Assembly: GCA_964036045.1 (NCBI GenBank)
Contig: OZ038378.1
Span: forward strand, 197,656,001-197,720,000
DNA: 64,000 nucleotides
Source of the DNA: Eutreptiella sp. 'Long Island Sound 2002'
Taxonomy: Eukaryota > Protista > Euglenida
Direction: 5' to 3'
Shown here: one piece after another, positions 1 to 64,000 of the stretch
Layout of the letters: every line of letters starts with the position of its first letter
Position numbering within the stretch: the stretch's first letter is position 1
Notes under the pieces: model-generated
Database searches by the model: none
What the model saw: only the letters and a program-made list of their open reading frames with translations
What the model was told of the DNA's origin: nothing
Translations under genes and position numbers: made by a program

Positions 1-2
1 AC

Positions 3-500
3 AAGTTGGAGGCAAACACCCCGTTTCCGAACATCTCCCCGGGTGCAGCTATGGTGTACACCACTCCTGAGAAGGTGTCGTTGTCCAACGACGCCCTAGA
101 CAAGTTGGTGGATTTGGATCCTGTGGCCTTTGTTGCAGACGAGGCTCACAAGGTCGCCCGAAGTGACAAAACATTTGGGCAGCAATGGACGGAGCTTGGG
201 ATTTGCCGACAAAGACTGCCCACCGTGCCGTGGTACGCATGCACAGCAACGGCCACAACACCTGAGCAACAGGCCATTATCGACCGCCTACACCTTCAAA
301 ATGCAGTTAACGTCCGTGGCATTCTCTACCGAGAAGAAATATCAATGGATTTTCACCACTACGCTCAACCGGTGAAACCTCAAAGACGTCATGCTCCTGA
401 ACTTGGTCCTTCCCCTTGTAAGGGGCAAGACATTGATCTTTTTCACCAACGTCGAAAAGTGCACGAACATGGTCAATATGTTGAAGAAGAAGGGTTTTAA
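3..500 (+). CDS. RecQ-type helicase RecA1 lobe (motifs II-III), copy A, 5'-partial at window edge
   Basis: VYTTPEKV, VADEAHKV (motif II DEAH), CTATAT (motif III), LYREEI. Near-identical to 35285-35782. Homology continues in the +1 frame after ~375. Confidence 0.85.
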   Translation, partial: KLEANTPFPNISPGAAMVYTTPEKVSLSNDALDKLVDLDPVAFVADEAHKVARSDKTFGQQWTELGICRQRLPTVPWYACTATATTPEQQAIIDRLHLQNAVNVRGILYREEISMDFHHYAQPVKPQRRHAPELGPSPCKGQDIDLFHQRRKVHEHGQYVEEEGF

Positions 501-2790
501 AGTGGCGAGCTTCACTGGTGCAACACCATCTTCTACCCGTGAGGCCGTCCTTAAGGACTTGGAGCAAGGGCTCATCGATATTGTGTGCTGCACTGCTGCT
601 TTGGAAATGGGTTGGCATGTCCCCGGCTTGCGGACACTCATCTTCACCAGTGTGCCATCCTCCATAACGCAGCTGATTCAGCTATTGGGGCGCCTTGCCC
701 GCGGTACGTCAGATTGCGGGGAGGTTCACATTCTATACCACCAGCACTCCCTGCGTACCCTTGCCAACTGGCACAAAGACAAGGTCAAGGCCCATGCAAA
801 TTACCACCTCACCTTGAACGACTACACATGTATGTATATGTTGATGCACACCCCAGGTTGCCGGTGGCAGAATTCGTTCCAGCATTCCGACCACGTGCTG
901 TTGGAGCCTTGTGGCACTCGCTGTGATAACTGCGTGAAGAACAGGCCACCAACAGACGCGGGGTTTGTGCTTGGCCTCTTTCTTCCGGCTTTAGCCTTGT
1001 GCGACAAAAGCGACGGCATTTGCCTTGGGCACTGCTTAGACCTCATTCAAGGGGTGCGACCCAAAGACCATTACGAGCGATATGGGCAGGAGCTTTGTAA
1101 TGCTCTCTTTGAGGTGGGCATTGCTAGCCAGCATGCTTGCGGGAGCAAGGGCTCGAAAGACCAATGGAGGGCTGTCATCATGAAAGGCATGGATTGGGAG
1201 TTGGTGAAAGCGATCCCGAACATCGACAGTGTGACTATGAATTTGAAGCTTGGGGAAGTGGAGTTCAATGACAAAGACTCGTACATCCTACATTTGGAAA
1301 AGGCGTTGCCGCAAGCGCCTCAGAATTTAAGTGAGCATGCTGCAGATGCGCTGGAGGATGCCTACCCGCTTCCTATGACGACTGCTGATGTGAAGCGGCT
1401 ATTTCGTGGAACCCTTCTCACTGTAGATGAGGTGCACGCAGCCCAAATCGACCACTTCGCTTGGACTCCAAGGGAAACGCTTCGACTAAAGATTGAAGCT
1501 TGCGTGGTGATGCCATCAAATTCAGAAGTTTGCAACGTGAGCATTGCCGTGAATTCAAGGGGAAGATTGGAGCAAGCAGCGGGGACATGCGGTCTAGTGG
1601 CTGAGGACGGCTCTGCTGCTGGTGGCTACCGTTGCCAGCACTGCTATGCTGTTGCCATGTCCCTCGCACTTGAACAGTGCGAGAAGAAGGTGCCCGGACA
1701 ACGGCGCACGGTGTTAGAAGGCCCATCCACCCGAGCTCAGCGCCTACAAGCAAAGCCAAAGCTCCTTCAGCTTCTGGAGAAAAGGGAATATGTGAAGCTT
1801 GACAAGCCCATTGATTGTCCAAAGTGTGACACCTTGTACGTGGCAGAAGATGTGTACGACTTGCCTTATGGGACCGACGACATACTTCCAGCATCCCTTG
1901 AGCTAACACGGTCTAGCCACGTGAAGAAATATTTTGGATATGATGAAGGTTTTGGCTGCCACCTAGCCTCGCAGGCGTGGACTTGCGCTGGCGCGCTCGT
2001 TTGCAAAGCAAATTCCTGCCGGGCCAGGGACAACAACGCCCAAACCGTGATCTGCCAACATGGAGAAATGCAGAAAAAACGGTGTGACGTCCGCATTTTT
2101 CACCTCTACCCAGTTCTGTTCCAGGGGTCCGTGGAACCTGATGAATACAACCGCCTTCGACTTCTTGCATTAATCCGCAGAGGCACGTTGGAGTTGGCTC
2201 CTGGCGATGACCCACCCAGTGTGAATGGTTGGGCTGGACACTCTCACCCAGTGCTAAAAGCCTTCAAGCCGCCTACACACTTGGATGATGAGATCTTACA
2301 GTGGTTCATTGACGACCCCAATCTCACGCCCCGAGAGGCACTAATGAAGAAGCTGACAACCGGCAAGACACCGCCGGGCGAGAACACCATGTACACAAAC
2401 ACCATGAGGATTGAGCAGCTCAAAGAACGGGCTTTAGTGTTGAAGAGGGATGATTATGAAGATGCCCATCGTTTGTTGAAGCGGTGGCTCAAAGACGAGG
2501 CATATTGGCTGCCAGACGACATGACAAATTATCTTCGGTCTGTCAAAACCAACACGCCTGAAAGGCCTGTCTTTGCTAGTGACGGCATGTTGAAGATTGC
2601 GGCAAAAGGCAAGGTTTTGGAGGTTGACATAACATTTTGGGACCATACGTTTATGAAGTACCTTCTCAACATTGTGGTGTTTGACGAGGACTTGACCAAA
2701 TGGTGGACCACGTTCCGAATGGCTACCTCAAAGCAAGATGCTGGGTTTTATCATGAGGCATTTCTCAAGTTCCTCGACTTGACAAAGGAG
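376..2790 (+). pseudogene. RecQ RecA2 + RQC (Zn and winged helix) + SWIM-like + GCM-like + start of MULE transposase, copy A, interrupted by an insertion at 2791
   Basis: KTLIFF (IV), CTAALEMG (V), QLLGRLAR (VI); CRW...PCGTRCDNC (RecQ Zn); GTC-x13-CQH (SWIM-like); WTCAGALVC..C...C...C...GHSHP (GCM-like); VDITF (first catalytic D). The ORF track runs on to 4380 only because the insert lacks T. Confidence 0.8.
2220..2790 (+). repeat. 571-bp direct duplication, copy 1 (left flank of insertion)
   Basis: Matches 6378-6948 (offset 4158). The only difference seen is GACTTG versus GAGATG. Confidence 0.9.
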
Positions 2791-5700
2791 CACAGCACGA
2801 GGAAAAGAGCACCACAGCACGCAGACACCACCACCGGGCCAAAAACAGCACAGCCAACCAACAGCACAACACAGCACAGCACGACGGCCCACAGGAGGGC
2901 AAAGCAAGCCCCAACAGCACCGCAACACGACAGCAGAGCACAACAGCACAGCACCACGCGACAGCACAGCACCACAAAACACAACACAGGAAAGCAGGGC
3001 ACCACAGCAAACCACACCAACCACAGGGAAGCAGACCACGCGGCCAGACAGGGACACCGACACCGAAACACGCCACCAGCAGACAACCACGGGCCACCAG
3101 ACCCAGCACCGCACCTGTGCACACCACAGGAAACAGCACAACACACAGCAGCGCACCACAGCACCAGGCGCCAGCAACAGCACGCACCACACGAACAGCA
3201 CAACGCGAGCGCACCAGCACAGCGAAGCACAGCACCGCACAGAACGGAGAGCACAGGGAACGCACACCACAGCACCCCGAGACACACACAGCACAAGGCA
3301 GAGCGGCGAACAACAGCACGCACCACCAGGCCACGACAAAACACACACAGCACAGAGCACACAGCGCGGGGGAACACCGCAAAACACAGCGCCGCAGAGC
3401 ACAGGGCCCCAGGGCGACGGGCAGCGCCAGAGGGCACGGCGCAACAAGCAGCGGCACCAAGCGAGCGCAACACAGCACACGACAGCACAACACCGGGCGA
3501 CACAACACGCAGCAGCGCGGCGCAGCACCGCACCCAGGCACGCACAGCACAACACGGCACACAGCACCGAGCGGCAGGAACGAAAACCGCGCGACACAAG
3601 GGGGGGGGGGGGGGGGGGCAGCAACCACGCGGGAGCAGCCAACAGCCAGGCGGAAAGCACGAAAGAGGGACAAGCGCACGGAGAGCCGAGAAGCGGAAGG
3701 CCAACAAAACAAACAACGCAAGCGCCGAGGCCCAGGGCACCCGGGGCCGGAAACCAGAGAAAGCCGGAGACAACGGGGGCGCACGGAGGAAGAGGAAGAG
3801 GGAGAAAAAAAAAAAAAAAAAAAACACAAAGGCCACAAGCAGGAGCGAGCAAAACCGCCGGACACAAAGGTGGGGGGGGGCGGGGGAGCAACCACCAAAG
3901 AGCAGCCAACGGCCAAGCAGGAGACACAAACGAAGCGCGAGCCAGGCAGCGGGAGGCCGAGAAAAACAACCAACGAGGAACGGCAACAGCAGCGAAGGAG
4001 AGAGGGGCAACCCCAGCCCGGAGGGGGCCAAGCAAAGCAGAAAGACAAAGCGGCCAAAGGAAAGGGTGAGGCGCACCAGAACGCGCCCGGGAGGCCGGCC
4101 CGCCCGACCCGGCCAAGCAAAGCACGCACACCACCGCCGCCAGCGGACCCCAGCCAGGAGTGGCGGGGACCGCCCACCACCAGCGGCAGCGAAACCCAGC
4201 CAGGAGTGGCGGGGAGTAGCACACAGGAACCTCCGCCAGGAGTGGCGAGGAACCCCAACAACACACCACACACCACACCACACACCACACACCACCGCCG
4301 CCAGCGGACCCCAGCCAGGAGTGGCGGGGACCGCCCACCACCACCGGCAGCGAAACCCAGCCAGGAGTGGCGGGGAGTAGCACACAGGGACCTCCGCCAG
4401 GAGTGGCGAGGGACCAACCACGCCACACACCAACCACAACCCCAACAACACACCACCGCCACACACCACACACCGACGCCGCCAGCGGACCCCAGCCAGG
4501 AGTGGCGGGGACCGCCCACCACCAGCGGCAGCGAAACCCAGCCAGGAGTGGCGGGGAGTAGCACACAGGAACCTCCGCCAGGAGTGGCGAGGGACCAACC
4601 ACACCACACACCAGCCACAACCCCACCAACACACCACCGCCACACACCACACACCACACACCACCGCCGCAAGCGGACCCCAGCCAGGAGTGGCGGGGAC
4701 CGCCCACCACCAGCGGCAGCGAAACCCAGCCAGGAGTGGCGGGGAGTAGCACACAGGAACCTCCGCCAGGAGTGGCGAGGGACCAACCACACCACACACC
4801 AGAACAACCCCACCAACACACCACCGCCACACACCACACACCACACACCACACACCACACACCACACACCACCGCCGCAAGCGGACCCCAGCCAGGAGTG
4901 GCGGGGACCGCCCGCCACCACCGGCAGCGAAACCCAGCCAGGAGTGGCGGGGAGTAGCACACAGGAACCTCCGCCAGGAGTGGCGAGGGACCAACCACAC
5001 CACACACCAGCCACAACCCCAGCAACACACCACCGCCACACACCACCGCCGCCGGCAGACCCCAGCCAGGAGTGGCGGGGACCGCCCACCGCCACCGGCA
5101 GCGAAACCCAGCCAGGAGTGGCGGGGAGTAGCACACAGGAACCTCCGCCAGGAGTGGCGAGGGACCAACCACACCACACACCAGCCACAGAGCAAGCGCC
5201 AGCAGAGGAAAGGCAAAGGGAGGTACAGCCAGGCGGCCCCCCCCCCCCCCCCCCCCCAAAAAAAAAGGGGGGAGGGGGTGGGCGCGCGAAAAGAGCCCAC
5301 AGCCACCAAACCGCCGCCAACAACACAGAAGGGGGCCAAACCCCCCACCCAGAGGGCACCGAAGACAGGACCCCCAAACAGGTACAGGGGGACCACCCAG
5401 CCAAAACCGGCGACACCAAGCCAGGAACAGCGGCCCAGCGGGAAAAGGAGCACCGAAACAAGCAGAGAAAAAAAAAAAAAAAAGCCAGCAGCCCAGCCCG
5501 AAAGAAAGGAGACGGGGGGAGAGACCACAAGGCCCGGGACGGGGACACCCAGCAACCGGAAAAAAAAAAAAAGCGCAAACAACACAGCCGGACAACCCAG
5601 CCAAGAAGGGCGGGGCACAGCCGAGACCCGGGCCCGGCACGCACGCCCACACCGCACACCGAAACCGGAAACGGCGGAGGGCAAGGGAAACGCGCACGAA

Positions 5701-6377
5701 ACCACACAGGTCCCGAAAGCAGGCCGACACCAAAGCCCAACCACGAACAGCACAAACAGCCGGCAAAAGAGGGACAACACCACAAACCGAGCCCAAACAC
5801 ACCCACCCAAGACCCCAGCCACAACAGGCAGGGGTAAACAAAACCCACCACCAAACGCAACCCGGACCCAACCACAAACGCAAGCCAACAGTAGGAAACC
5901 CAGTGCCCACAGCCCGGGCACTGAGGTAGCCCGTGCCATGCAGGTGACCCGGCCAAACGAGATCCGGAGCCCGGGGGTAAGGCTGCATCCTAAGGCCAGC
6001 GCTGCTTTGGGACTCGAGGCGGAGCGTGCGACACCCAAGCGCCTCGGAACCCTAGTACCAAGAACATGCATGCATGCCTTGGGAACGGGATACGCCAGGA
6101 AGTCCGGTGAACCCCTAGGGTTCCGCCCAAAGGAGGGGACGTGCGCAAGCACGGGGGCCCACCCTCCCGGCGAGACAAGCACGTCACGCTGGCGGCGATC
6201 AGCCCTCCCGGTGTAGCCGGGGGCCGCTTTGTTGGGGGCCAAAAGTCAGGTCTAGCGGGATGTAAGCCGCCTCCCCTCTTCACGCGCGGAGCCTCTTCCT
6301 GTTCGTCACAGGGGCGACGCCAGGGGGAACCATGGGGCGCCTCTCCACGACCGAGTGCACCTACCTACCTACCTACC
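2791..6377 (+). mobile_element. 3.6-kb non-coding insertion, probably a non-autonomous non-LTR retroelement with a (CTAC)n 3' tail
   Basis: Breaks the transposase ORF exactly after GACAAAGGAG. The body is T-depleted and low-complexity, followed by a ~450-bp GC-rich unique 3' part, and it ends in CACCTACCTACCTACCTACC. No RT or other protein motif is visible. Confidence 0.55.
4134..5190 (+). repeat. Six-copy minisatellite (~120-bp core built of three GCCAGGAGTGGCG subrepeats, plus variable CA-rich spacers)
   Basis: The core CGGACCCCAGCCAGGAGTGGCGGGGACCGCCC...GGAACCTCCGCCAGGAGTGGCGAGG recurs near 4140, 4300, 4480, 4670, 4880 and 5055. Confidence 0.9.
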
Positions 6378-6948
6378 TGTGAATGGTTGGGCTGGACACT
6401 CTCACCCAGTGCTAAAAGCCTTCAAGCCGCCTACACACTTGGATGATGAGATCTTACAGTGGTTCATTGACGACCCCAATCTCACGCCCCGAGAGGCACT
6501 AATGAAGAAGCTGACAACCGGCAAGACACCGCCGGGCGAGAACACCATGTACACAAACACCATGAGGATTGAGCAGCTCAAAGAACGGGCTTTAGTGTTG
6601 AAGAGGGATGATTATGAAGATGCCCATCGTTTGTTGAAGCGGTGGCTCAAAGACGAGGCATATTGGCTGCCAGACGACATGACAAATTATCTTCGGTCTG
6701 TCAAAACCAACACGCCTGAAAGGCCTGTCTTTGCTAGTGACGGCATGTTGAAGATTGCGGCAAAAGGCAAGGTTTTGGAGGTTGACATAACATTTTGGGA
6801 CCATACGTTTATGAAGTACCTTCTCAACATTGTGGTGTTTGACGAGGAGATGACCAAATGGTGGACCACGTTCCGAATGGCTACCTCAAAGCAAGATGCT
6901 GGGTTTTATCATGAGGCATTTCTCAAGTTCCTCGACTTGACAAAGGAG
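6378..6948 (+). repeat. 571-bp direct duplication, copy 2 (right flank of insertion)
   Basis: Begins TGTGAATGGTTGGGCTGG directly after the (CTAC)n tail and matches 2220-2790. Confidence 0.9.
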
Positions 6949-8184
6949 ACCGACCCGAATTTCAATCCTTTGCAGTGGCTAACAGTGGTCATGGATTTTT
7001 CGCAGGCCCAGCTCAAGGGACTGAAGTCCGCTCAGAAAGAGTACCTAAAGAAGCAAAACATTGAGTTGTCCGATGATGAGTTTGAAGCCTTTGTGGTCCG
7101 GGTGTTCCAAGGATGCCTACTTCACTTCCTGCGATGTGTGGAGGAGTGGTCCAACAAGATAGACAGCGAGATTGCCTCTGCAATGTTCAAAGAACGATGC
7201 AGGGCCATTCCTTCCATGTCAAAGGAGGCACGTGCGGAGATGTGGGATTGGCTGACAAAGCATTACAAAGCCCTTGAGGGTTTCATAAAGTTCTGGCGTG
7301 CACCGGAGGTGGATGCGTTGCTTTGTCATTTGCATCAAGGGAAGACGTTTGCGGACTGGGTAGCTAGCACGCGGGATAGCAATGCGGTGGAGAGCAGTCA
7401 TCGACCAGTGAAGGCGAAGGGCAAAAGCTTGGTTGACAAGTACCGTATTGTCACGGAAACTGATGCCCTAGTTGGTTTGCAGAGGCAAAACGTGGAACGG
7501 TACTCTGACACAGTAGCGGATAGGTTTTGGGTATTGCGGACAAGACAGAAGGCTCCGGCCAAGGAACGACAACCAAGGGGCGACCGCTATGTCAACGATG
7601 GGAAACCTAAGAAAGGTACCAAGAGAAAGGGCACAAGTGCCGAGGCAAAACCTCGTTCCAAGAAGGTGCGGTTCAACGAGGAACCCGCAGAGTTGCATGA
7701 GTACTCGCAACCGTCACAAACTCAAAACACACCTGGAACTCAAAGCACAACCGACGTCATTCCTTCGGAAGATGATGATATGGCCTTGACGCAGAATCCA
7801 TGTGGTGCTGCAGAGACTCGACAAGTCACATTGAAGCATGTAAAGGATTCACCTCCCGCCCTCAACAGCATTATGGCAACGTATACCACCGACAAGTCCA
7901 AAGTTTGGTTTGCCTTTGCACGCGAAGAGATGAAGAGCGGCTGGAAGGTTGATTGGGTGGAAAAAATTGAGGGACTTGACGTGCATTATCGGGTTGACAA
8001 GCTGGCACGTGACAAGCGTGACAAGGTGGAAATGGAGTGTATCGCTGTGACACAAGTCCCATTTTCCTGTGAGTGTGGTTTCCGGAACGTAACGGTGCAG
8101 ACATGCCAGTGTAGAGTGGTGCAAATCACCAAGGACCACCTAAAGTCTTGCATCAGTTTGGCGAAGAAGCATAACAAGAAGTGA
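6379..8184 (+). CDS. Mutator/MULE-family DDE transposase catalytic region and C-terminus (copy A, separated from its N-terminus)
   Basis: VDITF (D), VVMDFSQAQLKGL (D), GCLLHFLR (CxxH), DSNAVESSH (E) occur in Mutator order and spacing. They are followed by a basic NLS-like stretch KPKKGTKRK..KKVRF and a C-terminal CxC-x9-CxC. The ORF-track start at 6355 lies in the insert tail. Confidence 0.85.
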   Translation: MNGWAGHSHPVLKAFKPPTHLDDEILQWFIDDPNLTPREALMKKLTTGKTPPGENTMYTNTMRIEQLKERALVLKRDDYEDAHRLLKRWLKDEAYWLPDDMTNYLRSVKTNTPERPVFASDGMLKIAAKGKVLEVDITFWDHTFMKYLLNIVVFDEEMTKWWTTFRMATSKQDAGFYHEAFLKFLDLTKETDPNFNPLQWLTVVMDFSQAQLKGLKSAQKEYLKKQNIELSDDEFEAFVVRVFQGCLLHFLRCVEEWSNKIDSEIASAMFKERCRAIPSMSKEARAEMWDWLTKHYKALEGFIKFWRAPEVDALLCHLHQGKTFADWVASTRDSNAVESSHRPVKAKGKSLVDKYRIVTETDALVGLQRQNVERYSDTVADRFWVLRTRQKAPAKERQPRGDRYVNDGKPKKGTKRKGTSAEAKPRSKKVRFNEEPAELHEYSQPSQTQNTPGTQSTTDVIPSEDDDMALTQNPCGAAETRQVTLKHVKDSPPALNSIMATYTTDKSKVWFAFAREEMKSGWKVDWVEKIEGLDVHYRVDKLARDKRDKVEMECIAVTQVPFSCECGFRNVTVQTCQCRVVQITKDHLKSCISLAKKHNKK

Positions 8185-10609
8185 TTTCTGCAAGCGCGCT
8201 CAACAGTTGCATCGAGGGTTTCATGACCCTTGCCATGGGAGGCCCAAGTGGGCATGGCAGGTCAACATATAATATGCATCAAAGAATTGAACTCATGAGA
8301 TTTCGCTCCGCTGTGTTCTTTCTTTTTTGTTGAAATCACAAGCTCGCAGCAGTGGACAACCATGCTTGGCCTTGGTAGTAAAGTATAAATTGTGGATCTT
8401 CCGAGCACTCATGGGGTTCTCCCAAGCACCTTTGAATCACAAGTTTGCAACATATCTGCACTGCAAAGTCAAGTCATGCCGGTTGGCACATGATTTATGC
8501 ATTAGAGGACCAAATCACATGTTTGGGATATTCCTCTCTTTTGTTTGAATGAGAAGGTTGCAACACCTACGACCGCACTTGCATTTGCTGGTCATTGATC
8601 ACTCCCATGGTCATGGTCAAGGGAAGATAGGTTCCCTCGAACCGGTTCCTCTTCCATTTTTCTTCTTCGCCGACTCCTTTGTCCACACATTCAACCTTAT
8701 TTGTTTTGCCCACATGATTCAATCCACCCATCCCCCCACCAAGCAATTCATGGGGAGACGGGAGCTGGACTACAAGAGATGACAGAGGTGCATAGCCATA
8801 ATGTGAGGACTCACAAGTGCTCACATGTTGTGGACCCCTCATCTATGACGTCTGGTCCTTGTCGAACCGTGATTGCCCGCTGTGAGCACTTTCGTCTTCT
8901 TTCTCCCCTTGTAGGCCATAGTTTTGCTCCCAACAAGTACCTCAATCTCCTCTTGGGGTGTATTTTGTGGCGGGGACTTCCCTGAGTCGTTCCTGACTGA
9001 TGATAAGGCCACATAATACTCTTGACTGCGCCCACACTTGTTCCTTGAGCTTGTCTTTCGAGTAGTACCCCCCCCCCTACATCCCACATCTCTCCCCGTT
9101 ACCGTAGTCATCTATGCAGGCTTGAGTGAACGCTTTGGCAATCCCCCCCCCCTATTTTCTCTAATTATCGGCCGGTTGGCCCACTCATAGTTCCCCCTTC
9201 TATCCCCCCCCCCCCCACAATGCGGGAAGCCACCCTTAAGCAGGTTGTTGGATCACAATTTCCCTTCCTTCTACCTTCCCTCTTTTCCCATGTGTCTGGC
9301 AGCCCACACACTTGGCAACCCCGTAATTCTATTGCTAGCCCCAGGTTGCAGAGATGAGGCAATTGAACGTGTGATGTAGCCAATGTAATTTTGTTTCTTG
9401 AACTGTGCATTTTCTGTCCCATACCTCCTTGCCGTCACCTCCCCATCCACCGTGACCCATGCTTTGGGATGTGGGTGAATCTTTGTATAATTGGGTCAGG
9501 GACAGTTTATAGTATGGTGTCGATTTATGTTGAGAAAAAACGGTTGCAAAATATTTGCGCGAATGGTGGTGGTTTGGGTTCTACCCATTTCTTCACTCGT
9601 GACACAACATTTTTGCGCTCTTTGGCCGCGCGCATATTCGTTCTCATCAAATTTCCACTTATCTTATTACAAGAGCATCTTCAAAGTTATAAACGCCCCC
9701 AAGACATATGAGCAATTACAATATTTGCGATGTACCTTGGAAATGGGGGATGCCCATTTTGTTTTTTCTCATCTTGTGATCTTTGAGTTTGCTCAAGCTT
9801 TCATGCTCACAGTATGTCTTCTCCTAGCAAAGGCTGTGAGTGCAACCTGATGCATTGGCTGTTGTGGAAGTGTGAAAATAGCAAGTTGGCATCTATCCCT
9901 ATGAGAGGATTCTGCCATATTTTTTAGTGGTGCCTTGTTTCTTTTGCAAATCACAAGATTGCATATCCGCCCACAACCGTGTCATGAATTCTAGGTTGAA
10001 CCCTTGAAAATGGCACAATTTTGTGACCAACCCAAGTTACGGAGAAGTTTTTTTGTGCATGTGTTTGTTGACATTTGCACTACTTTGTCATTTGATGCCA
10101 TGGCATGCCACTTAACAACCCTAAACAGTGCAACATGTCTGCGAAACGGTTCTTCGGTCTCACTGTCCTCTTTAAATACCACCCCCACGCAGTTTATGGC
10201 CCACGCGATGCCGGTTCCTAAATTGCAAGAAACACATCACGTGGTGCTGCACTGCGGTTGGGAGGGCGACACATGGTCAGCAGACAGCATGCACTTCCGC
10301 ATTTGAATTCGCGTATTCTCATCCTGCGCCGATGCAGAACGAAAGGGTGGGGGCAGAGGAATACAATTCAGCCACAAATTATAGCAAGCCTGAGGCGCCA
10401 TGAATTGGCGCATGAGTGTGACAGAATAGCACGTCTGTGGTGACAGCGATAGGTTAACCAGCTACGGTTGCGATGGAACGTTGTGCTAATCCCTCAAGTT
10501 TGTGGTGCCCCATACCATTGATGTCCTTGGGATTGGCTACGTGTCCTTCAGACTGCAACAAATGCTTTGAGTTTTTGCTTTGTTTGTTTGTGGAGAGTTT
10601 GTGTCCCAG

Positions 10610-22749: not shown

Positions 22750-22811
22750 GCACAGACACAGACACAGACATAGACACAGACGCAGACACACACACACACA
22801 CACACACACAC
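22750..22811 (+). repeat. (CAGACA)n/(CA)n microsatellite
   Basis: Seen directly; a second copy is at ~51415-51473. Confidence 0.9.
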
Positions 22812-52683: not shown

Positions 52684-53700
52684 AGTTTTTTGGCTTCAGC
52701 CAAGCAGTTGAAGACGTCCCCCCTATTTTGAGGGTGCTGGATGCGAAAAGGCATGTTGTAGGCAGACCCAGATCACGAAAAGACAATTTACAGCATCCGT
52801 ATGCACCAAAAGTTGCCATTTTTCACTAAAAAAAACGGCCAAAAATGGCCGTTTTTTTGGTCAAAAATTGATTTTTTTGGCTTCAGCCAAGCAGTTGAAG
52901 ACCCCCCCCCCTACTGTGAGGGTGCTGGATGCAGAGAAGCATGTTGTAGGCAGACACAGGTCACGAAAACACAATATACAGCATCCGTATGCACCAAAAT
53001 TTGCCATGTTTCATGCAAAAACGGCCAAACATGGCCCTTTTTTGGTCAATATTTGAGTTTTTTCGCTTCAGACAAGCAGTTGAAGACCCCTCCCCCTATT
53101 TTGAGGGTGCTGGATGCGAAAAAACTGGTGGTAGAGGCATATAGATCACGAAAACACAATTTAAAGCATCCGTATGCACCAAAATTTGCCATTTTTCATG
53201 AAATAACGGCCAAAAATGGCCGTTTTTTGGTCAAAAACTGAGTTTTTTGGCTTCAGATAAGCAGTTGAAGAACCCACCCCGATTTTGACGGTGTTGGATG
53301 CGAGAAAGCAGGTTGTAGAGGCAGACAGATCACGAAAAATCCATTTAAAGCATGCGTATGCACCAAAATTTGCCATTTTTCATGAAAAAACGGCCAAAAA
53401 TGGCCGGGTTTTTTGGTCAAAAATTGAGTTTTTTGGCCTCAGACAAGCAGTTGAAGAACCCCCCCCTATTTTGAGGGTGCTGGATGCGAAGAAGCAGGTT
53501 GTAGAGGCACACAGATCACGAAAACTCCATCTACAGCATCCGTATGTACCAAAATTTGCCATTTTTCCATGAAAAAATGGCCAAAAATGGCCGCTTTTTG
53601 GTCCAAAATGGAGTTTTTTTGGCCTCAGACAAGCAGTTGTAGACTACCCCCCCCCTGTTTTGAGGGTGGTGGACTCAACAAAACGTGCTCTGCAACGTTT
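52684..53700 (+). repeat. ~186-bp tandem repeat, ~5.5 copies
   Basis: TTTTTGGCTTCAGACAAGCAGTTGAAGACCCCCCCTATTTTGAGGGTGCTGGATGCG...CAGCATCCGTATGCACCAAAATTTGCC...GGCCAAAAATGGCC. Confidence 0.9.
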
Positions 53701-53779
53701 TGGAGCAAGTTATCGAGTGTTTCGGAGCCGCCTTAACCAAATAACCGCATGTTTTGCCCAAAAATGGCCAAAAAATGCC

Positions 53780-54345
53780 ATTTTTTTTGGCCTGAAACAG
53801 TGTTTTTGGGGCCTGAGTGGTCAGTAGTAGGGCCCCATATCCTATTTTGAGGGTGCCGGACTCAAAAAAACGTGTTTTGCAAGGTTTTGGAGCATTTTAT
53901 CGATTGTTTTTGAGCCACCATCACCAAAAAACCGCTTTTTTTGGCCTAAAACAGTGTTTTTGGGGCCTGAGTGGTCAGTTGTAGGGCCCCATACACTATT
54001 TTGAGGGTGCTGGACCCAAAAGAAAGTGTTTCGGAAGGTTTTGGAGGATATGCTCGAGGGTTTCAGGGACGCCATAACCAGAAAACAACTTTTTTGGCCA
54101 AAAGTGGCCAAAAAATGCCATTTTTTGGCCTAAAACAGTGTTTTTGGGGCCTGAGTGGTCAGATATAGGGCCCCATACCCTATTTTCAGGGTGCTGGACT
54201 CAAAAAAGCGTTTTTTTCAGGGGTTTTAGGCAAATGATCAACGATTTGGGAGCCACCATCACCAACAACCCACATTTTTTTGTCCAAAAATGCCAATTTT
54301 TTTGCCTAAAACAGCATTTTTGGGGCATGAGTGGTCAGTTGTAGG
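53780..54345 (+). repeat. ~155-185-bp tandem repeat, 3-4 copies, related to the neighbouring arrays
   Basis: TTTTTGGCCTAAAACAGTGTTTTTGGGGCCTGAGTGGTCAG..GTAGGGCCCCATA..CTATTTTGAGGGTGCTGGAC. Confidence 0.85.
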
Positions 54346-54352
54346 GTCAAAA

Positions 54353-55270
54353 AAATGAGTAAATGAGGGTTTTGAAAATGTTTTAATGAGGACCCCCCCT
54401 ATTTTGGGGGCGCTGAATCCAAACAACATGCCGTTAGAGTCCAAGGATTTGCTTTTTGGGTACTTTTTGAGTAAAGGTGTATGCAGGTAGTTAGTGCCAC
54501 GTCTGGTGAAATCTGGTAACCCCCCCCCCCCCGGGGGCCATTTTTGGGGAAAATGGGTAAATCAGGGTTTTGAAAATGTTTTCATGAGGACCCCTCCTAT
54601 TTTGGGGGCGTTGAATCCAAAAAACAAGCCGTTAGAGTCCAAAGATTTGCTCTTTGGGTACTTTTTGAGTAAAGGTGTATGCAGGTAGTTAGTGCCACGT
54701 CTTGTGAAATCTGGTAACCCCCCCCCCCCCCGGGGGCCATTTTTGGGGAAAATGGGTAAATGAGGGTTTTGGAAATGTTTTCATGAGGACCCCCCCTATT
54801 TTGGGGGCGCTGAGTCGAAAAAACATGCCGTTAGAGTCCAAAGATTTGCTCTTTGGGTACTTTTTGAGTAAAGGTGTATGCAGGTGGTTAGTGCCACGTC
54901 TTGTGAAATCTGGTAAACCCCCCCCCCCGGGGGGCCATTTTTGGGGAAAATGGGTAAATGAGGGTTTTGGAAATGTTTTCATGAGGACCCCCCCTATTTT
55001 GGGGGCGCTGAGTCGAAAAAACATGCCGTTAGAGTCCAAAGATTTGCTCTTTGGGTACTTTTTGAGTAAAGGTGTATGCAGGTAGTTAGTGCCACATCTG
55101 GTGAAATCTGGTAACCCCCCCCCCTGGGGGGGCTTTTTTTGAAAAAAATGGGTAAATGAGGGTTTTGGAAATGTTTTCATGAGGAACCCCCCTATTTTGG
55201 GGGCGCCGAATCCAAAAAACATGCCGTTGGAGTCCAAGTAATAGGTTTTTGGGTACTTTTTGAGTAAAGT
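54353..55270 (+). repeat. 198-199-bp tandem repeat, ~4.6 copies
   Basis: AAATGGGTAAATGAGGGTTTT... starts at 54353, 54551, 54750, 54948 and 55146. Confidence 0.95.
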
Positions 55271-55289
55271 GACGTTTTGGCCCGTAAAA

Positions 55290-58200
55290 TCATAGGTGCA
55301 GGGAAGCGGCGCCGTACCTGAACAAGGTGCGGGCCACGTACCCGGTTGGAGTCACCGAACTGGACGCGGCACTCCACCTTCTACATCCATCCCACGAGGA
55401 CTTGAAAGTGGGTGAAGTCACGGTATTCGTTGAAGGCGTGCGGGAGACGCCCACCCGCCCCCGCCCAACCAACCCGGTGTACGACGGCACCAGGCCGATC
55501 CCCCAATAAGCCGTCGTGTGCGAGGGATTCCCCAGAGAGCCCACCTGGTGTCCCACCCTCCCGCCGGCCACACACGCGCCCCGCGGCTGGACCAGCCCGC
55601 ACATGTCCCCCCCCATCTCGAGGACCAGGGGTGCCTACCACAGAGGGCATGTCCTCTGGCAAGAGGGCCCGGACACCCGCCTGCTCCTCCCCCTCGTCAC
55701 GACCCGCGGGGACCCGGAGCGGGTCCTGGGGGTCGACCCCTCCCACCTCTACGGGGCAGCGCCGGTGCCCGGCCCCCCCCTCCCGACGCCAGAGGCGCGG
55801 GACGGGGTGCACGCTTTCCTGCGAACACAGGGGGTCAGCGCCGTTATGGGGGTCCACCTTGTGCTGCTCCCCCCGGCATCGCTCGATGGCCCCCGGGGGC
55901 CCAGGGCCCTGAGCCCCACAACAGACTAGGAGCTGTGGCGCGACGTGTCGGCCGCGTGGCTCGCCAGCCTCCCGCCCCAGTGCCGGTGGATGACCACCAA
56001 CCCCTGCTGAAACGGAACCAGCACAGCCGCCAGCCCCCCCCTTTCATCCCCCCCTCCCCCCCGCGCAGCACTACACGGCACTGCCCACGGCACGCCACTG
56101 ATAGGAGGTAGCGGTACGGACACGCCTGCGACCACGCATGCCTACCAGGATCACAGGGATGTCGGACTCCGATGGCTCCCCCCAGCGGGACGACAGCCAC
56201 CACTGCCGGTCCCGCTCCCGTTCCCCAGTTTCCGCGGGATACGTGGGGGAGACCGTCGCGGAGCGCGAGGAGCGGCGGCTGGCGGGGGCCGCAGTGCCGG
56301 TCAGGCCGCCGGTTCAGCAGCCCCGGGCGGCCCCCGCCGACCCCGAGCCGCCGGCCCAGGAGCCCGTGCCGGCCGAGGAGGCCGCCCCTGCCGCTCAGGC
56401 CGCGGCCCCTGCCGCCCCGCCCCCGGAGGAGGCCCCAGGTGCACAAGGAGCTGAGACTGCGGCGCCGGCACGTCGCCGGCGCGGGTGACAGGGCGCGCGC
56501 GGGCCCCGAGCGCCTCGCCGAGAGCCGCCGCAGCCGCAGCGGAGCGAAGGGAGGGCGCCACAGTACCGTGCCCACACCAAGCCAAGCCACACCAACACCA
56601 GCCCCCCGAAGCCGTACCCGCCCAAGGCCGCCTTCCCCAAGGGGAGGCCGCGGCCCGTTGGCCCCCCGGCGCCTACGCGTACGCCGCCGGGCATCACACT
56701 GCCGCAGCTGCAGCGGCAGCAAGACGCCCGGCGCGTGATCCAGGAGGGGGGCCACGGCGCCGGGCGGGGCAGGGTACCAGCCACGGGAGCGCAGAGCGAG
56801 GGGCGGGAGGCGACAGGGGGAGCACCCAGGGACGGACGCAGGGGACGGGGCAGGGCGCACACGGCAAGGAGAGAGGGCAAGGGCACGGACACGGCACCAA
56901 GGCCAGCGGCAGCGGGGGAGAACAGGCACACAGGGCAGGCCAGAGTGCGAGCAGCGGACGACGGGACGCAGGACACAGCGGGGAAAGGGCAAGGGGACGG
57001 GAAGGATGCGGGCGCGAGCAGCAGCGCCACGGGACGGGCGCAATGACATGTGCAGGGCGCCACGGCTGGCGGCGTCAGGGCGCACGGGGCTGGCCAGGGC
57101 GCGGTCAGCGGACGAGGACACAGCCAGGGACACGGGCAAGGACGCGGGAAGGGCAGGGGCGTCAGCGGAATGGGCAAGGGCATGGGTGACAGAGGTCGGG
57201 ACCGGCGGCACATGCCAGAAGGCAAAGCTGAGGGAGTGCGCCCGAGCCAGGGGCTAGGGGCCGGGACGGGACCCAGGGGCAAGGTGGGGAAGGGTGACAT
57301 AGGCCCCCGGGGACAGGCAGGGCGGGGCGTGGGGGCAAGGGGGGACGGGCAGTGCGTAGGGCGAGGGACCGGGAGCGGGGCGCCCCCGCAACCGGACGTC
57401 CAGCCGGTGCGGTGCATACCCCCCGGTATCCAACAGATGCCGGCGCACCCCATCCACTACCACCACCACCACCACGCCCACCTCTACAACATCGACCCCG
57501 ACGCGGGGGACCTAGTCCTCCCCCAACCCCCCCGACCCCCCTACCAGCCGGCCCTCCAGCCGCACTGCGGCGCCCCGCGCGGCCCCTCTCCCGCGGCACG
57601 AAGGCCGAGGGCGGAGCCGGCGCGGATGGCTGCTGCCCTGGCGGCGCGGGGGTTTGGCGCGGCGCAGGCGCCACAGGCGCAGGAGCCGCAGGAAGAGCCG
57701 GCACGGGGGGCAGAGGGGACCCGGGGCCATTGGGCCCGGGACTGGGACGCGATCCGGGACCCCCTGGTCGTTGAGGTGTATGAGTGGCTGAGCTGGGCCA
57801 CCTCGGGGACCACCAGGGGGTTGAGGAACTGGCAGTTCCATTCCGTGCTCCTCCGGAGGGACTGGGGGAACCGGAAGGTGCCCCCGGGGGGTCGGATGGC
57901 CCAGGAGGACCACGAAAGGGTTCTCTGAGCTGTGATTCGGGTGGGGAGCCGACCCGACCGGCTTTCTTGGAGGGGGGTGCGGTGCTCCGCGTCACAGATG
58001 CAGAGGCCAACAACTGGCCCCTCCGGGCCCTGCACACCGCCCTCACCCAGTGCTGCTACCGCCGGAGGAACCCGCCGCCGCCGGAGCCCCAGCCCCCACA
58101 CAAGCAGCGGCTATGGTCCCGGGCGGCGGGCATAGGGGGGGGGGGAGAGGACAAGCGGCGCGGGACACCCCACCGGCAGGCCTGGGCCCCTTGACCCAGA

Positions 58201-58610
58201 GCTCTCCCCCACCCCCCCCTGCGGTTCGCACAGCGGGAGGTTGTGCGCCGCCCCCGGTAGGGGAGAGGATGGGAGACACAAACACGCCGACGCGCGCAAC
58301 GCGGGGATCCCACTGACCCGCAGACCGGTAACCAAGAACTGTGCATATCATCTGGGCGAAGGCAGCCAGGGGTGTCTGGGGCTTGGTACATGTCTTCACC
58401 CACAAGCTGTTTTTCACAAGGGACATCATGGATGATGATGCAGTCCCCAAGCATTTTAGCGTCCCAGAACCCAAGCCTAAGCCTAAGCCGAAGCCAGCTC
58501 CAAAGGCAACCGCAACACCGAAGCCTGGCCCCAAGGGGCAGCACAGACAGGAATACAGGATGGTGCATCACAGGAAGAAGGGTTTCGCACCTCAGCCAGT
58601 TGAACAGTAG
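55290..58610 (+). pseudogene. GC-rich degenerate coding-like sequence, probably a decayed mobile-element ORF; family unidentified
   Basis: Same-frame ORF pieces are split by single stops (55327-55509 and 55516-55929). Protein-like stretches (WDAIRDPLVVEVYEWLSW; FFTRDIMDDDAVPKHF) alternate with low-complexity tracts. No diagnostic motif was recognised. Confidence 0.3.
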
Positions 58611-58814
58611 ATCATCCCATGCACGTCCGAAGGCACGCTACAGCCCAGTCAGCTGAGATTCACTCCTTTGGTGTTCATTTGTCAACGTGGTTAACTGTTG
58701 CAAAGGAGCCTTTGCTTGGTAGCTCTGGTTTTTGATTTGGTTTGCTACATTCGATGCTTGGTAGTGTAAGTGCTGTGTGGCTTGGGTGCATTCGTATTTG
58801 GTGTCTTGGTGGTT

Positions 58815-60152
58815 GACTTGACCAAATGGTGGACCACGTTCCGAATGGCTACCTCAAAGCAAGATGCTGGGTTTTATCATGAGGCATTTCTCAAGTTCCT
58901 CGACTTGACAAAGGAGACCGACCCGAATTTCAATCCTTTGCAGTGGCTAACAGTGGTCATGGATTTTTCGCAGGCCCAGCTCAAGGGACTGAAGTCCGCT
59001 CAGAAAGAGTACCTAAAGAAGCAAAACATTGAGTTGTCCGATGATGAGTTTGAAGCCTTTGTGGTCCGGGTGTTCCAAGGATGCCTACTTCACTTCCTGC
59101 GATGTGTGGAGGAGTGGTCCAACAAGATAGACAGCGAGATTGCCTCTGCAATGTTCAAAGAACGATGCAGGGCCATTCCTTCCATGTCAAAGGAGGCACG
59201 TGCGGAGATGTGGGATTGGCTGACAAAGCATTACAAAGCCCTTGAGGGTTTCATAAAGTTCTGGCGTGCACCGGAGGTGGATGCGTTGCTTTGTCATTTG
59301 CATCAAGGGAAGACGTTTGCGGACTGGGTAGCTAGCACGCGGGATAGCAATGCGGTGGAGAGCAGTCATCGACCAGTGAAGGCGAAGGGCAAAAGCTTGG
59401 TTGACAAGTACCGTATTGTCACGGAAACTGATGCCCTAGTTGGTTTGCAGAGGCAAAACGTGGAACGGTACTCTGACACAGTAGCGGATAGGTTTTGGGT
59501 ATTGCGGACAAGACAGAAGGCTCCGGCCAAGGAACGACAACCAAGGGGCGACCGCTATGTCAACGATGGGAAACCTAAGAAAGGTACCAAGAGAAAGGGC
59601 ACAAGTGCCGAGGCAAAACCTCGTTCCAAGAAGGTGCGGTTCAACGAGGAACCCGCAGAGTTGCATGAGTACTCGCAACCGTCACAAACTCAAAACACAC
59701 CTGGAACTCAAAGCACACCCGACGTCATTCCTTCGGAAGATGATGATATGGCCTTGACGCAGAATCCATGTGGTGCTGCAGAGACTCGACAAGTCACATT
59801 GAAGCATGTAAAGGATTCACCTCCCGCCCTCAACAGCATTATGGCAACGTATACCACCGACAAGTCCAAAGTTTGGTTTGCCTTTGCACGCGAAGAGATG
59901 AAGAGCGGCTGGAAGGTTGATTGGGTGGAAAAAATTGAGGGACTTGACGTGCATTATCGGGTTGACAAGCTGGCACGTGACAAGCGTGACAAGGTGGAAA
60001 TGGAGTGTATCGCTGTGACACAAGTCCCATTTTCCTGTGAGTGTGGTTTCCGGAACGTAACGGTGCAGACATGCCAGTGTAGAGTGGTGCAAATCACCAA
60101 GGACCACCTAAAGTCTTGCATCAGTTTGGCGAAGAAGCATAACAAGAAGTGA
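58815..60152 (+). pseudogene. 5'-truncated MULE transposase, copy C (lacks the first catalytic Asp)
   Basis: Homology starts abruptly at GACTTGACCAAATGG, downstream of VDITF. The rest matches the copy ending at 8184 almost exactly. The ORF-track start at 58770 is in unrelated DNA. Confidence 0.88.
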
Positions 60153-63100
60153 TTTCTGCAAGCGCGCTCAACAGTTGCATCGAGGGTTTCATGACCCTTG
60201 CCATGGGAGGCCCAAGTGGGCATGGCAGGTCAACATATAATATGCATCAAAGAATTGAACTCATGAGATTTCGCTCCGCTGTGTTCTTTCTTTTCTGTTG
60301 AAATCACAAGCTCGCAGCAGTGGACAACCATGCTTGGCCTTGGTAGTAAAGTATAAATTGTGGATCTTCCGAGCACTCATAAGGTTCTCCCAAGCACCTT
60401 TGAATCACAAGTTTGCAACATATCTGCACTGGAAAGTCAAGTCATGCCGGTTGGCACATGATTTATGCATTAGAGGACCAAATCACATGTTTGGGATATT
60501 CCTCTCTTTTGTTTGAATGAGAAGGTTGCAACACCTACGACCGCACTTGCATTTGCTGGTCATTGATCACTCCCATGGTCATGGTCAAGGGAAGATAGGT
60601 TCCCTCGAACCGGTTCCTCTTCCATTTTTCTTCTTCGCCGACTCCTTTGTCCACACATTCAACCTTATTTGTTTTGCCCACATGATTCAATCCACCCATC
60701 CCCCCACCAAGCAATTCATGGGGAGACGGGAGCTGGACTACAAGAGATGACAGAGGTGCATAGCCATAATGTGAGGACTCACAAGTGCTCACATGTTGTG
60801 GACCCCTCATCTATGACGTCTGGTCCTTGTCGAACCGTGATTGCCCGCTGTGAGCACTTTCGTCTTCTTTCTCCCCTTGTAGGCCATAGTTTTGCTCCCA
60901 ACAAGTACCTCAATCTCCTCTTGGGGTGTATTTTGTGGCGGGGACTTCCCTGAGTCGTTCCTGACTGATGATAAGGCCACATAATACTCTTGACTGCGCC
61001 CACACTTGTTCCTTGAGCTTGTCTTTCGAGTAGTACCCCCCCCCCCTACATCCCACATCTCTCCCCGTTACCGTAGTCATCTATGCAGGCTTGAGTGAAC
61101 GCTTTGGCAATCCCCCCCCCCCTATTTTCTCTAATTATCGGCGGGTTGGCCCACTCATAGTTCCCCCTTCTATCCCCCCCCCCCCCCCCCACAATGCGGG
61201 AAGCCACCCTTAAGCAGGTTGTTGGATCACAATTTCCCTTCCTTCTACCTTCCCTCTTTTCCCATGTGTCTGGCAGCCCACACACATGGCAACCCCGTAA
61301 TTCTATTGCTAGCCCCAGGTTGCAGAGATGAGGCAATTGAACGTGTGATGTAGCCAATGTAATTTTGTTTCTTGAACTGTGCATTTTCTGTCCCATACCT
61401 CCTTGCCGTCACCTCCCCATCCACCGTGACCCATGGTTTGGGATGTGGGTGAATCTTTGTATAATTGGGTCAGGGACAGTTTATAGTATGGTGTCGATTT
61501 ATGTTGAGAAAAAACGGTTGCAAAATATTTGCGCGAATGGTGGTGGTTTGGGTTCTACCCATTTCTTCACTCGTGACACAACATTTTTGCACTCTTTGGC
61601 CGCGCGCATATTCGTTCTTATCAAATTTCCACTTATCTTATTACAAGAGCATCTTCAAAGTTATAAACGCCCCCAAGACATATGAGCAATTACAATATTT
61701 GCGATGTACCTTGGAAATGGGGGATGCCCATTTTGTTTTTTCTCATCTTGTGATCTTTGAGTTTGCTCAAGCTTTCATGCTCACAGTATGTCTTCTCCTA
61801 GCAAAGGCTGTGAGTGCAACCTGATGCATTGGCTGTTGTGGAAGTGTGAAAATAGCAAGTTGGCATCTATCCGTATGAGAGGATTCAGCCATATTTTTTA
61901 GTGGTGCCTTGTTTCTTTTGCAAATCACAAGATTGCATATCCGCCCACAACCGTGTCATGAATTCTAGGTTGAACCCTTGAAAATGGCACAATTTTGTGA
62001 CCAACCCAAGTTACGGAGAAGTTTTTTTGTGCATGTGTTTGTTGACATTTGCACTACTTTGTCATTTGATGCCATGGCATGCCACTTAACAACCCTAAAC
62101 AGTGCAACATGTCTGCGAAACGGTTCTTCGGTCTCACTGTCCTCTTTAAATACCACCCCCACGCAGTTTATGGCCCACGCGATGCCGGTTCCTAAATTGC
62201 AAGAAACACATCACGTGGTGCTGCACTGCGGTTGGGAGGGCGACACATGGTCAGCAGACAGCATGCACTTCCGCATTTGAATTCGCGTATTCTCATCCTG
62301 CGCCGATGCAGAACGAAAGGGTGGGGGCAGAGGAATACAATTCAGCCACAAATTATAGCAAGCCTGAGGCGCCATGAATTGGCGCATGAGTGTGACAGAA
62401 TAGCACGTCTGTGGTGACAGCGATAGGTTAACCAGCTACGGTTGCGATGGAACGTTGTGCATATCCCTCAAGTTTGTGGTGCCCCATACCATTGATGTCC
62501 TTGGGATTGGCTACGTGTCCTTCAGACTGCAACAATTGCTTTGAGTTTTTGCTTTGTTTGTTTGTGGAGAGTTTGTGTCCCAGACCCGTACACACCCTAA
62601 TACCCAACACATTGGTGGACTTCAATTTGTTGCCAAGCGCGCGAACCTGCCACGGGAAATGAAGTGTTGATGGGGTGCAGTAACACTCATCGTAGCTGAC
62701 CCCACTCGTTATCTAATTCAATAGTTCATTTGACCCTGAATTGCCACACTTGTCATTCCCCAAAATTTTGGGCTGAATGGACCCGCCATATCCGAGCACC
62801 ATGCAAATTACCAAAGCACATTAGCAGACTTCAAATTGTTGCCAAGCGTAGGAACCTACTATGGGAAATGAAGTATTGAGGGGGTAAGGTAGAATGAAAA
62901 GTGATGGCACGCGGCAGTGGTATGCAGCAATTGCACCTTGTGGATGCCACATGGACGGCACATCCCGGGGGCCATGCCACTTTTGCTTGCTAGGTTGGGC
63001 CATAGTGACCGGCCCTTCCCTAGTAGCGTTGGTGTGGCTGAAGCATGCCATGGTGCAAGGTGCATTACGAAGGCATGGCACCTATCTTGACAGCGCACGC

Positions 63101-64000
63101 TCACCGCGAATATGTGTTTCTTCATGGCAAGACATTACGGAACTGATCGGCATTGTTTGTTTCACATAGTTGCATGATTGGGGAGAGGGCGCCTTGGTGG
63201 ATGCTTCTCTTTCACAGGTTTCAGCCCAACTCTGCGCTCGACCATGCTTAAAACGCCATGAACTTGAAATTAGCGAGCAGTGGACTCAATATGTGCCTAT
63301 GGACGGTGCCCCAAAACTACGTCCGTTTTTAGTGCAGTTGCATTGGGAAAGGCCCTCCACACACTCAATGTGTGTGCATGAGCTGGCAACCATCTTCCAC
63401 AGTTTTCAACCCACTGTAGCATGTTGTGGGTCACGTACTCCGCGTGCGGTGCTGCATACAAGTCCATTGGGCATTGCAAAGGGTGGTCTCCAAAGAAGCA
63501 TGCTCCTTAGTGAAATGAGATTTTCCCTTTTCTTTGAAAAACCTTTGCTACCCCTCCAATGCAGGAAAACGATGGTGCGCTGCAGCTGTTTCAGAGGAGT
63601 TTGCACCACTTTGTGTAGAGGTAACCCACAGTGTCACGAGAGGCAAAGCCGATATGCCAAATTTTTGTACGTACAGCAAGTACGCACGACTAAAGGACGT
63701 CTCGTCACTGCGGATGGAGCCCTGGAAGGCTCACCTTGATTGAGAGTGTTTTGACAGCGCTGCCCGCCATGAGCTTCTAGAGCTGACACACTCGATGGCA
63801 CACAAGTGTGGGGAACATGTGCGCAATGCATTCCACGCCGTGCATTGCGTGGTTCGTTGTTTCGGGGGGTTGTGTTAGACGTACCGCCTAGAGTAATTTC
63901 CTTGCACACCCATGAACAGTAAACCTTCATTGTGGTCAAAGCATCACTGCACATTTGGACTTGGTAGCTGGTCCGGATTTCTCCCGTCTACTATCCCTAC
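58815..64000 (+). repeat. Third copy of the unit (equivalent to ~6847-12027), running off the window
   Basis: The ORF track repeats at an offset of 51968-51974. Confidence 0.95.

Follow-up and report, generated by a model that had tools for sequence, protein, structure and literature searches.

Three unequal copies in a 64-kb window

The DNA analysed here, hereafter called the window, is a stretch of 64,000 nucleotides from the euglenid Eutreptiella sp. 'Long Island Sound 2002' (GenBank assembly GCA_964036045.1, contig OZ038378.1, positions 197,656,001 to 197,720,000, forward strand). It carries three broken copies, called A, B and C, of a very large DNA transposon that encodes a transposase fused to a helicase. 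The window was compared with itself, and the comparison was repeated with 50 kb of flank on each side (164 kb in total). The repeats proved to be co-oriented, colinear and 99.3-99.8% identical, so that the three same-direction, very similar copies announced in an earlier annotation of this DNA, the original prediction, are real. The uniform, in-register period of ~31.1 kb that it had proposed was not recovered. Positions 35283-37160 repeat positions 1-1878 of copy A at an offset of 35,282 (99.84% identity), and this A-to-B offset of the left half stays at 35,282-35,286 across the segment named P below. Further to the right, 37166-52012 in B matches 8506-23350 in A at an offset of 28,660, 60474-64000 in C matches 37166-40687 in B at an offset of 23,308, with a match that runs past the window end, and 58819-64000 in C matches 6851-12027 in A at an offset of 51,968. 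Within copy A, 6378-6948 also matches 2220-2790 (offset 4,158). The figure of 31.1 kb is the size of the one segment duplicated at the join between A and B (-11937 to 23350, minus a 4,158-bp insertion in A).

Numbering on into the flanks in window coordinates, the segments follow one another as R-end, X, S, T / 181-bp satellite (sat181), U, P, Q, R, X / P (Q deleted), R, X, S / Q', R, X, S, T, with slashes at joins; unique DNA begins after T, at 89228. Here U is a GC-rich minisatellite, P, Q and R are parts of the transposon, and X, S and T are foreign repeats. The upstream block consists of the satellite (-18470 to -13823), then U, then P (-11937 to 1878), and copy A is completed by Q (1879 to 8505), R (8506 to 22258) and the adjoining X (22259 to 23350). 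Downstream come P (23349 to 37160), R (37166 to 50920), X, S (52013 to 58814), Q' (58819 to 60473, the equivalent of 6851 to 8505), and then R, X, S and T as far as 89228. The copies are unequal, B being devoid of Q, and C of P and most of Q. Spacers of foreign repeats lie between them, 1.1 kb (X) from A to B and 7.9 kb (X and S) from B to C. The statement that no flanking DNA separates A from B was thus wrong in detail, since the element ends at 22258 and X (22259-23350) belongs to other repeat families. No Ns were found in the 164 kb examined, and Rfam gave no match in the window.

All features of the window are read on the forward strand. Copy A enters it with the end of segment P (1-1878), which holds the Helicase_C half of the fused gene and begins 11.9 kb upstream of the window. 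An A-specific disruption of 4,158 bp (2791-6948), made of a 3,587-bp insert with a GC-rich 161-208-bp satellite and of the 571-bp repeat of 2220-2790, severs this helicase part from the IS256/Mutator-type DDE transposase part (6355-8184, a frame of 609 amino acids). Segment R (8506-22258), the non-coding 3' half, is 99.35% identical to its counterpart in B and 99.27% to that in C; it extends to the element terminus and includes the 3' terminal inverted-repeat segment (22110-22247), whose inverted matches lie far upstream in other copies. X (22259-23350), outside the element, is made of foreign flanking repeats.

At junction J1, from A to B (23349-23350), the end of X is joined to the middle of the element, at the start of P, with a 2-bp microhomology, CA. 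Segment P of copy B (23349-37160) is 99.56% identical to that of copy A. It is followed by junction J3 (37161-37165), a deletion of 6.6 kb (positions 1879-8505 of A, including the transposase) filled by 5 bp, CGCAA, and then by segment R of copy B (37166-50920), which matches A up to the 3' terminus. The mosaic of X and S between B and C (50921-58814) contains 185- and 198-bp satellites and a block of 74% GC. At junction J2, from B to C (58815-58818), the end of S is joined through a 4-bp filler, GACT, to the middle of the transposase gene (equivalent of 6851). Copy C (58819-64000) is truncated at its 5' side and consists of a transposase tail (460-amino-acid frame) followed by R; its 3' end lies beyond the window, at 74232. 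The left edges of A, B and C are therefore T/sat181, X/mid-P and S/mid-transposase, respectively. The T/sat181 join is blunt, and no element end is present at X/P, S/Q', the B deletion or T/sat181.

Segment R is packed with repeats of 126-334 bp, mostly ~151 bp, as seen at 13000-19100 (and 41700-47750). They lie in either orientation and in places form almost perfect inverted pairs, for instance 14648-15070 with 16720-17133 (97%). These repeats could be binding sites, insertions of miniature inverted-repeat transposable elements (MITEs), or foldback structure. As to the 3,587-bp insert of copy A, its satellite is strongly A/C-skewed, it is bracketed by the 571-bp direct gene duplication (2220-2790 and 6378-6948), and a (CCTA)n run lies at its right join. 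It looks like a duplication-insertion rather than the target-site duplication of a transposon. Judged by their conserved 14.55-kb match spacing, the dispersed copies described below do not contain it.

That X, S and T might be parts of the element was considered and rejected, as these are independent repeat families. S splits into at least two older families found at many loci with 79-94% identity. Two loci of C9 carry X together with S but not the giant element, and at 5 loci the start of X forms a boundary. The tail of T, a distinct repeat of higher abundance, is unlinked to the dispersed copies. An open reading frame (ORF) of 1,025 amino acids in T (window coordinates -25024 to -21947, L011:4976-8053) has a weak match to group-1 glycosyltransferases (E=3e-5), below the cut-off.

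A dispersed family of elements of about 40-72 kb

Genome-wide mapping was carried out with short unique probes. It revealed a family of repeated DNA, spread over several chromosomes, whose copies number at least 13 and are 96-100% alike. A probe spanning the Q/R boundary gave 12 full-length matches and 4 partial ones at 97-100% (several sites on C1, then C2, C4, C11, C23 and small contigs), and a probe for the start of P detected 13 copies. All 12 copies other than B run at least 1.3 kb farther upstream at the start of P, where they match the upstream region of A. The left edge of B is therefore a breakpoint inside the element, because all other copies continue upstream. The junction from sat181 to U is common to the dispersed copies, whose arrays measure 11-31 kb, against 4.6 kb in A. 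At the 3' terminus, 24 loci outside the local cluster stop matching at 22256-22258, although the query runs into X.

For five copies, a 200-bp probe of this 3' terminus gave inverted matches of ~138 bp (88-89%) at a distance of 21.7-72 kb upstream of the 3' end. At the present locus, an inverted end (87%) was found at C1:197510330-469, 50.7 kb upstream of its 3' end. The family thus has long terminal inverted repeats (TIRs), paired with 3' ends at six loci (87-89%, the outermost 11 bp excluded). Measured from the inverted ends, the element spans 72.0 kb at C1:161.53-161.60 Mb, 40.4 kb and 39.5 kb in the two copies at C1:84.2-84.3 Mb, and 50.7 kb in the copy at this locus, referred to as the founder; deletion derivatives measure 27.3 and 21.7 kb. 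The element, at about 40-72 kb, is far larger than the 31-kb unit. From 5' to 3', it is composed of an inverted ~138-bp end, an array of the 181-bp satellite, the GC-rich minisatellite U, a gene for a Ulp1-like protease, a fusion gene of 1,705 amino acids, and a non-coding, repeat-laden tail of ~14 kb. The 181-bp array separates the 5' inverted end from U in every mapped copy, with a length of 4.6 to more than 30 kb. The existence of copies at least 99% identical on several chromosomes indicates very recent activity.

Related structures were also encountered. At C15:19315075-19335412, 20 kb of DNA lie between two 3'-type termini in inverted orientation; one of them repeats the terminal 164 bp in inverted form at 99%, and the other is a normal 3' end placed 24 bp after a 5.8-kb array of the 181-bp satellite. 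The structure could be a double-ended derivative of the family, or a foldback one. Long 181-bp arrays apart from any mapped P, Q or R segment were observed at C25:14473337-14504397 and C15:19329414-19335199. They may have been seeded by the transposon-borne repeat, or be remnants of deleted elements.

The helicase-transposase fusion and the protease

For the protein searches, the ORF pieces were used separately and never joined into one query. Pfam detected Peptidase_C48 (Ulp1) in ORF 26878-29799 (E=7e-6), DEAD in ORF 34205-35782 (E=2e-13), and Helicase_C in ORFs 35673-37208 (E=4e-17) and 391-2790 (E=7e-17). ORFs 34205-35782 and 35673-37208 overlap in different frames. The top PDB sequence matches of the helicase were BLM and RecQ. 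The 609-amino-acid frame (6355-8184) matched no Pfam domain, even at E≤10, and Pfam was likewise silent on the remaining ORFs of P, R, S and the A-specific insert. Neither the transposase ORF nor its family profile found a meaningful sequence match in the PDB.

Out of 1.84 billion representatives, an exhaustive HMMER search with the 609-amino-acid frame retrieved only 56 relatives. Among these, P0006 (1,666 amino acids) presents DEAD, Helicase_C and RecQ_Zn_bind, then the region homologous to the transposase, then a weak SWIM finger, in an order colinear with the window ORFs. The consensus of the family alignment (A1) includes D..TF, VVDFSxAQ (D214 invariant), GCxVH (C254 and H257 at ≥90%, forming a CxxH at residues 254-257) and TTNAxESxN, the ES motif. 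Six of 32 relatives matched PF10551, at sub-threshold level only (best E=2.5e-4, 21.9 bits for a cut-off of 27.6), 2 of the 32 matched PF00872, and no other transposase family competed with PF10551 among them. The window ORF itself gave neither PF10551 nor PF00872 above the curated cut-off, the profile test for Mutator-like elements (MULEs). A protein-language-model look-up went in the same direction as the sub-threshold PF10551 matches. In the hhalign comparison, the partner alignment of the canonical MULEs of this genome had an Neff of 1.1.

ISCth4 had been named as the expected fold match before the structural search. The AF2 (AlphaFold) model of the transposase shows an RNase H-like core (pLDDT, the predicted local distance difference test, 85-98) with the order beta-beta-beta-alpha-beta-alpha-beta. 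The closest fold was indeed that of the IS256-family transposase ISCth4 (6xgx, 6xg8; Foldseek E=2.8e-4, probability 1.0). VIA gave Z=13.7 for ISCth4 over 235 residues (root-mean-square deviation 5.4), ahead of Hermes (10.1), the P element (9.3) and RAG1 (9.0). By its predicted fold and its motifs, the transposase is a member of the IS256/Mutator superfamily.

Several other assignments were considered. A Helitron-like, rolling-circle element, which would have an HUH Rep domain fused to a Pif1-like SF1 helicase, was rejected: the helicase is composed of DEAD and Helicase_C (superfamily 2, SF2) and is BLM/RecQ-like, P0006 having in addition the RecQ zinc-binding domain, and there is no Rep domain. 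As for a helicase-encoding Academ element (AcademH), mentioned only in passing in the literature searched, the modelled fold and the motifs speak rather for IS256/Mutator. At E≤10, Pfam detected no PHD finger in the ORFs of the gene, and a GCM domain was not found either. A 'SET' domain was dismissed, as it had a single weak match (E=0.013), and SWIM was not retained as a firm call, its weak match being in the relative P0006.

In five copies outside the cluster, the transposase is held in a single open frame of 1,703-1,705 amino acids. As this frame reaches back to the start of the helicase ORF, the fusion is real. The copies of the cluster are all coding-dead, A by a frameshift and the insertion, B by a frameshift and the transposase deletion, and C because only the 460-amino-acid tail is left. 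The transposase also has more distant relatives (32-36% identity, with frames of up to 1,290 amino acids) at C13:23612093, C17:38003144, C9:30798637, C6:32722387, C4:84456671 and C4:110.04-110.12 Mb, which indicates that the genome holds a wider group of such elements.

Founder insertion and origin of the local copies

The founder is a complete copy of 50.7 kb situated at C1:~197510316-197561058, 95-146 kb upstream of the window. The full junction between the 3' end and X was found in only 5 copies, all of this cluster. In an alignment of 3.55 kb with 11 close copies, five derived substitutions are present only in A, B and the founder, each of which has in addition 2-6 private changes. The same three copies share a frame break between the DEAD and Helicase_C parts, the founder frame being of 1,216 amino acids, compared to 1,703-1,705 in five others. 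Taken together, the shared junction of the 3' end with X, the five private substitutions and the shared frameshift indicate one founder insertion. The S/Q' junction exists twice, at J2 and ~146 kb upstream (C1:197568758/861). No inverted element end is present within the window and 50 kb on either side (164 kb).

Very probably, all three copies are fragments, in one orientation, of one insertion of the giant element, multiplied locally by nested tandem duplications whose breakpoints are arbitrary. The rearranged cluster, which measures at least 235 kb, would thus stem from a single insertion of a giant TIR DNA transposon. We infer the order of events and the repair pathway as follows. A first duplication, from the middle of the transposase gene (Q6851) to the end of S, would have produced the S/Q' junction. 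A second, of a ~107.7-kb block that starts inside the satellite array and reaches the end of T, would have produced T/sat181. Within the second block, a 31-kb piece from mid-element P to the end of X would then have been duplicated, creating X/P. Afterwards, B would have lost 6.6 kb, A gained 4.2 kb, and the upstream block received large insertions. The joins look like products of end-joining or template switching. The four local copies of the R end have 8-10 private changes each per 4 kb, and 1 site and 1 indel favour grouping A with B and copy0 with C; such a near-star-like pattern suggests that the events took place in quick succession.

As a separate observation, the second R copy of the upstream block is interrupted by ~15.6 kb at C1:197571778-197587407. 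There the two ends of the R match have 5 bp in common (query 2914-2918), a hint of an insertion that generated a target-site duplication of 5 bp.

Several points weigh against nested duplication of a single insertion. The element boundaries were set by match ends and inverted matches. As the local copies are near-star-like, the proposed order of duplications would rest on junction parsimony and not on phylogeny. The junctions are those of the assembly. In addition, the founder sits between two copies of one 1.56-kb host segment (X and S[1-466]): at C1:197508754-197562700, X and S[1-466] extend up to the 5' inverted end, and X and S are found again after the 3' end. X-S is single and uninterrupted at both founder points in the two C9 loci, which are therefore usable as paralogous empty sites. 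A second same-orientation pair was also found, at C1:84220795-84317238, with copies 56 kb apart (39.5 and 40.4 kb, 16.5-kb spacer) that have in common 8 derived substitutions and the same break of the transposase frame (527 amino acids). The duplicated flank of the founder and this pair hint that the element may promote local duplication.

The same end product could have another, partly overlapping cause, in which the transposon itself triggers duplication. Alternative transposition on sister chromatids in S phase would be followed by re-replication, possibly of the rolling-circle type, then by abort and end joining. The position of the founder between two direct 1.56-kb host copies is the layout described for reversed-ends transposition of maize Ac, whose product is a transposon between duplicated flanks (PMC3744419). 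Transposition-mediated re-replication is known to yield composite insertions of 14-24 kb with 0-3 bp of microhomology at the internal junction (PMC4270019), and the present joins are comparable, with 0-2 bp of microhomology or a short filler; partial element and flank segments are likewise put together in the Ac/Ds composites (PMC3744419, PMC4270019). Near-simultaneous, star-like local copies would fit one burst, and the C1:84.2 Mb pair, with its 8 derived sites in common, provides another local case. However, J1, J2 and T/sat181 are without an element terminus, unlike the breakpoints of alternative transposition. The frameshift present in the founder and all local copies also means that the protein must have come from other copies, and the precedent concerns hAT elements, whereas the present superfamily is Mutator. 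We hold this cause to be unlikely, though one to be reckoned with. The broader proposal that local amplification is a recurrent by-product of the element's movement, by alternative transposition or re-replication, appears more doubtful; it is founded on the 1.56-kb duplicated flank of the founder, the three near-simultaneous duplications, the 56-kb pair at C1:84.2 Mb and partial upstream copies at C11 and C598.

Misassembly, that is, haplotypes or collapsed or expanded repeats laid in tandem, would also generate such an array. The region is highly repetitive, near-identical copies are present on the small unplaced contigs C554, C598 and C764, and the local divergence of 0.3-0.7% could equal heterozygosity. 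Against this stand the continuity of the sequence, with no Ns in 164 kb, the private substitutions and private large indels of each copy, the non-homologous joins with filler, which are not expected from overlap-based misjoins, and the assembly of the S/Q' junction twice in different contexts. An artefact is in our opinion very improbable.

The original prediction had offered two readings, a giant cargo-carrying MULE undergoing replicative or concatemeric transposition with its own helicase, or a segmental tandem duplication of a transposon-rich block. The identity of the element was well seen in the first one, and even understated, as it is a 40-72-kb TIR element with a helicase fused to an IS256/Mutator-type transposase. 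The concatemer part, a ~31-kb element set head-to-tail as whole units, does not stand. It could draw on the common orientation of the copies, on the SF2 helicase fused to the transposase, and on the nearest solved relative, ISCth4, a member of the IS256 family, which, from PDB titles, reportedly transposes by copy-out/paste-in. Yet no unit of the window is bounded by element ends, no copy starts at one, and the 164 kb examined do not contain the true 5' end. Unit lengths are unequal, foreign DNA lies between units, the junctions are unique non-homologous joins inside the element, and the local copies are coding-dead. Among the genome-wide matches, no inverted end was found abutted to a 3' end, and the helicase is RecQ-like SF2, with no HUH Rep domain in Pfam. 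Whole-element concatemers and helicase-driven replicative transposition are contradicted by this junction anatomy, and the ~31-kb replicating unit is scarcely credible. The 31-kb unit exists at this locus only, with arbitrary breakpoints and no element-like ends, an outcome that had been named beforehand as speaking against the giant-MULE reading. The mapping of genomic copies proposed at the same time defined the dispersed copies, the 3' terminus and the ~138-bp inverted ends. It is the segmental tandem duplication that agrees with the shared junction of the 3' end with X, the S/Q' junction present in two blocks, and the five shared private substitutions.

Compared with known systems, the locus differs in nothing essential from nested tandem segmental duplication, which likewise has arbitrary breakpoints with microhomology or filler, and junctions and private substitutions common to derived copies; three events within ~235 kb, apparently in a short time, are nevertheless unusual. 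The element resembles MULEs by its DDE transposase, in which the residues follow D / D / CxxH / E and the predicted fold comes nearest to ISCth4, by its long imperfect TIRs (~138 bp), by its internal-deletion derivatives (21.7 and 27.3 kb) and by the weak PF10551 matches in 6 of 32 relatives, and it resembles Ulp1-carrying MULEs by the Ulp1/C48 protease gene alongside. It departs from MULEs in that one frame of 1,705 amino acids unites the transposase with a RecQ-like helicase, and in that the window ORF reaches no Pfam MULE threshold. Its size is far above the figures quoted for MULEs (PMC6431247, PMC13359780), and no description of a helicase-Mutator fusion was found in the literature searched. 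With Rehavkus it shares long inverted termini and a variable subterminal tandem array, here the 181-bp array of 4.6 to more than 30 kb by the 5' end; Rehavkus-associated repeats reach 80 kb in Tribolium (bioRxiv 10.1101/2024.12.02.626372; PMC6446971). However, no PHD finger was found here, the array is at one end only, and neither a helicase fusion nor a Ulp1 gene has been described for Rehavkus, which is reported only from arthropods and annelids (PMC6446971).

The array of the window would therefore be a case of ordinary nested tandem duplication and not a new replicative mode of transposition, which is deflationary for the concatemer claim. What deserves attention is the element, apparently a cut-and-paste-type transposon of the Mutator superfamily that, with its 40-72 kb, is several times the size commonly cited for MULEs. 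Its cargo is notable as well, with a RecQ-like helicase fusion, a Ulp1-like gene, and a satellite array whose length differs more than six-fold among copies. As a natural system, it lends itself to work on the mobilisation of very large DNA transposons, the role of a transposase-linked helicase, and the seeding of satellites by transposon-borne repeats, and the base-level junctions of this locus provide material on how duplications pile up around such elements. If local amplification did prove to be a recurrent by-product of their movement, these elements would be driving segmental duplications of 50-100 kb in the genome.

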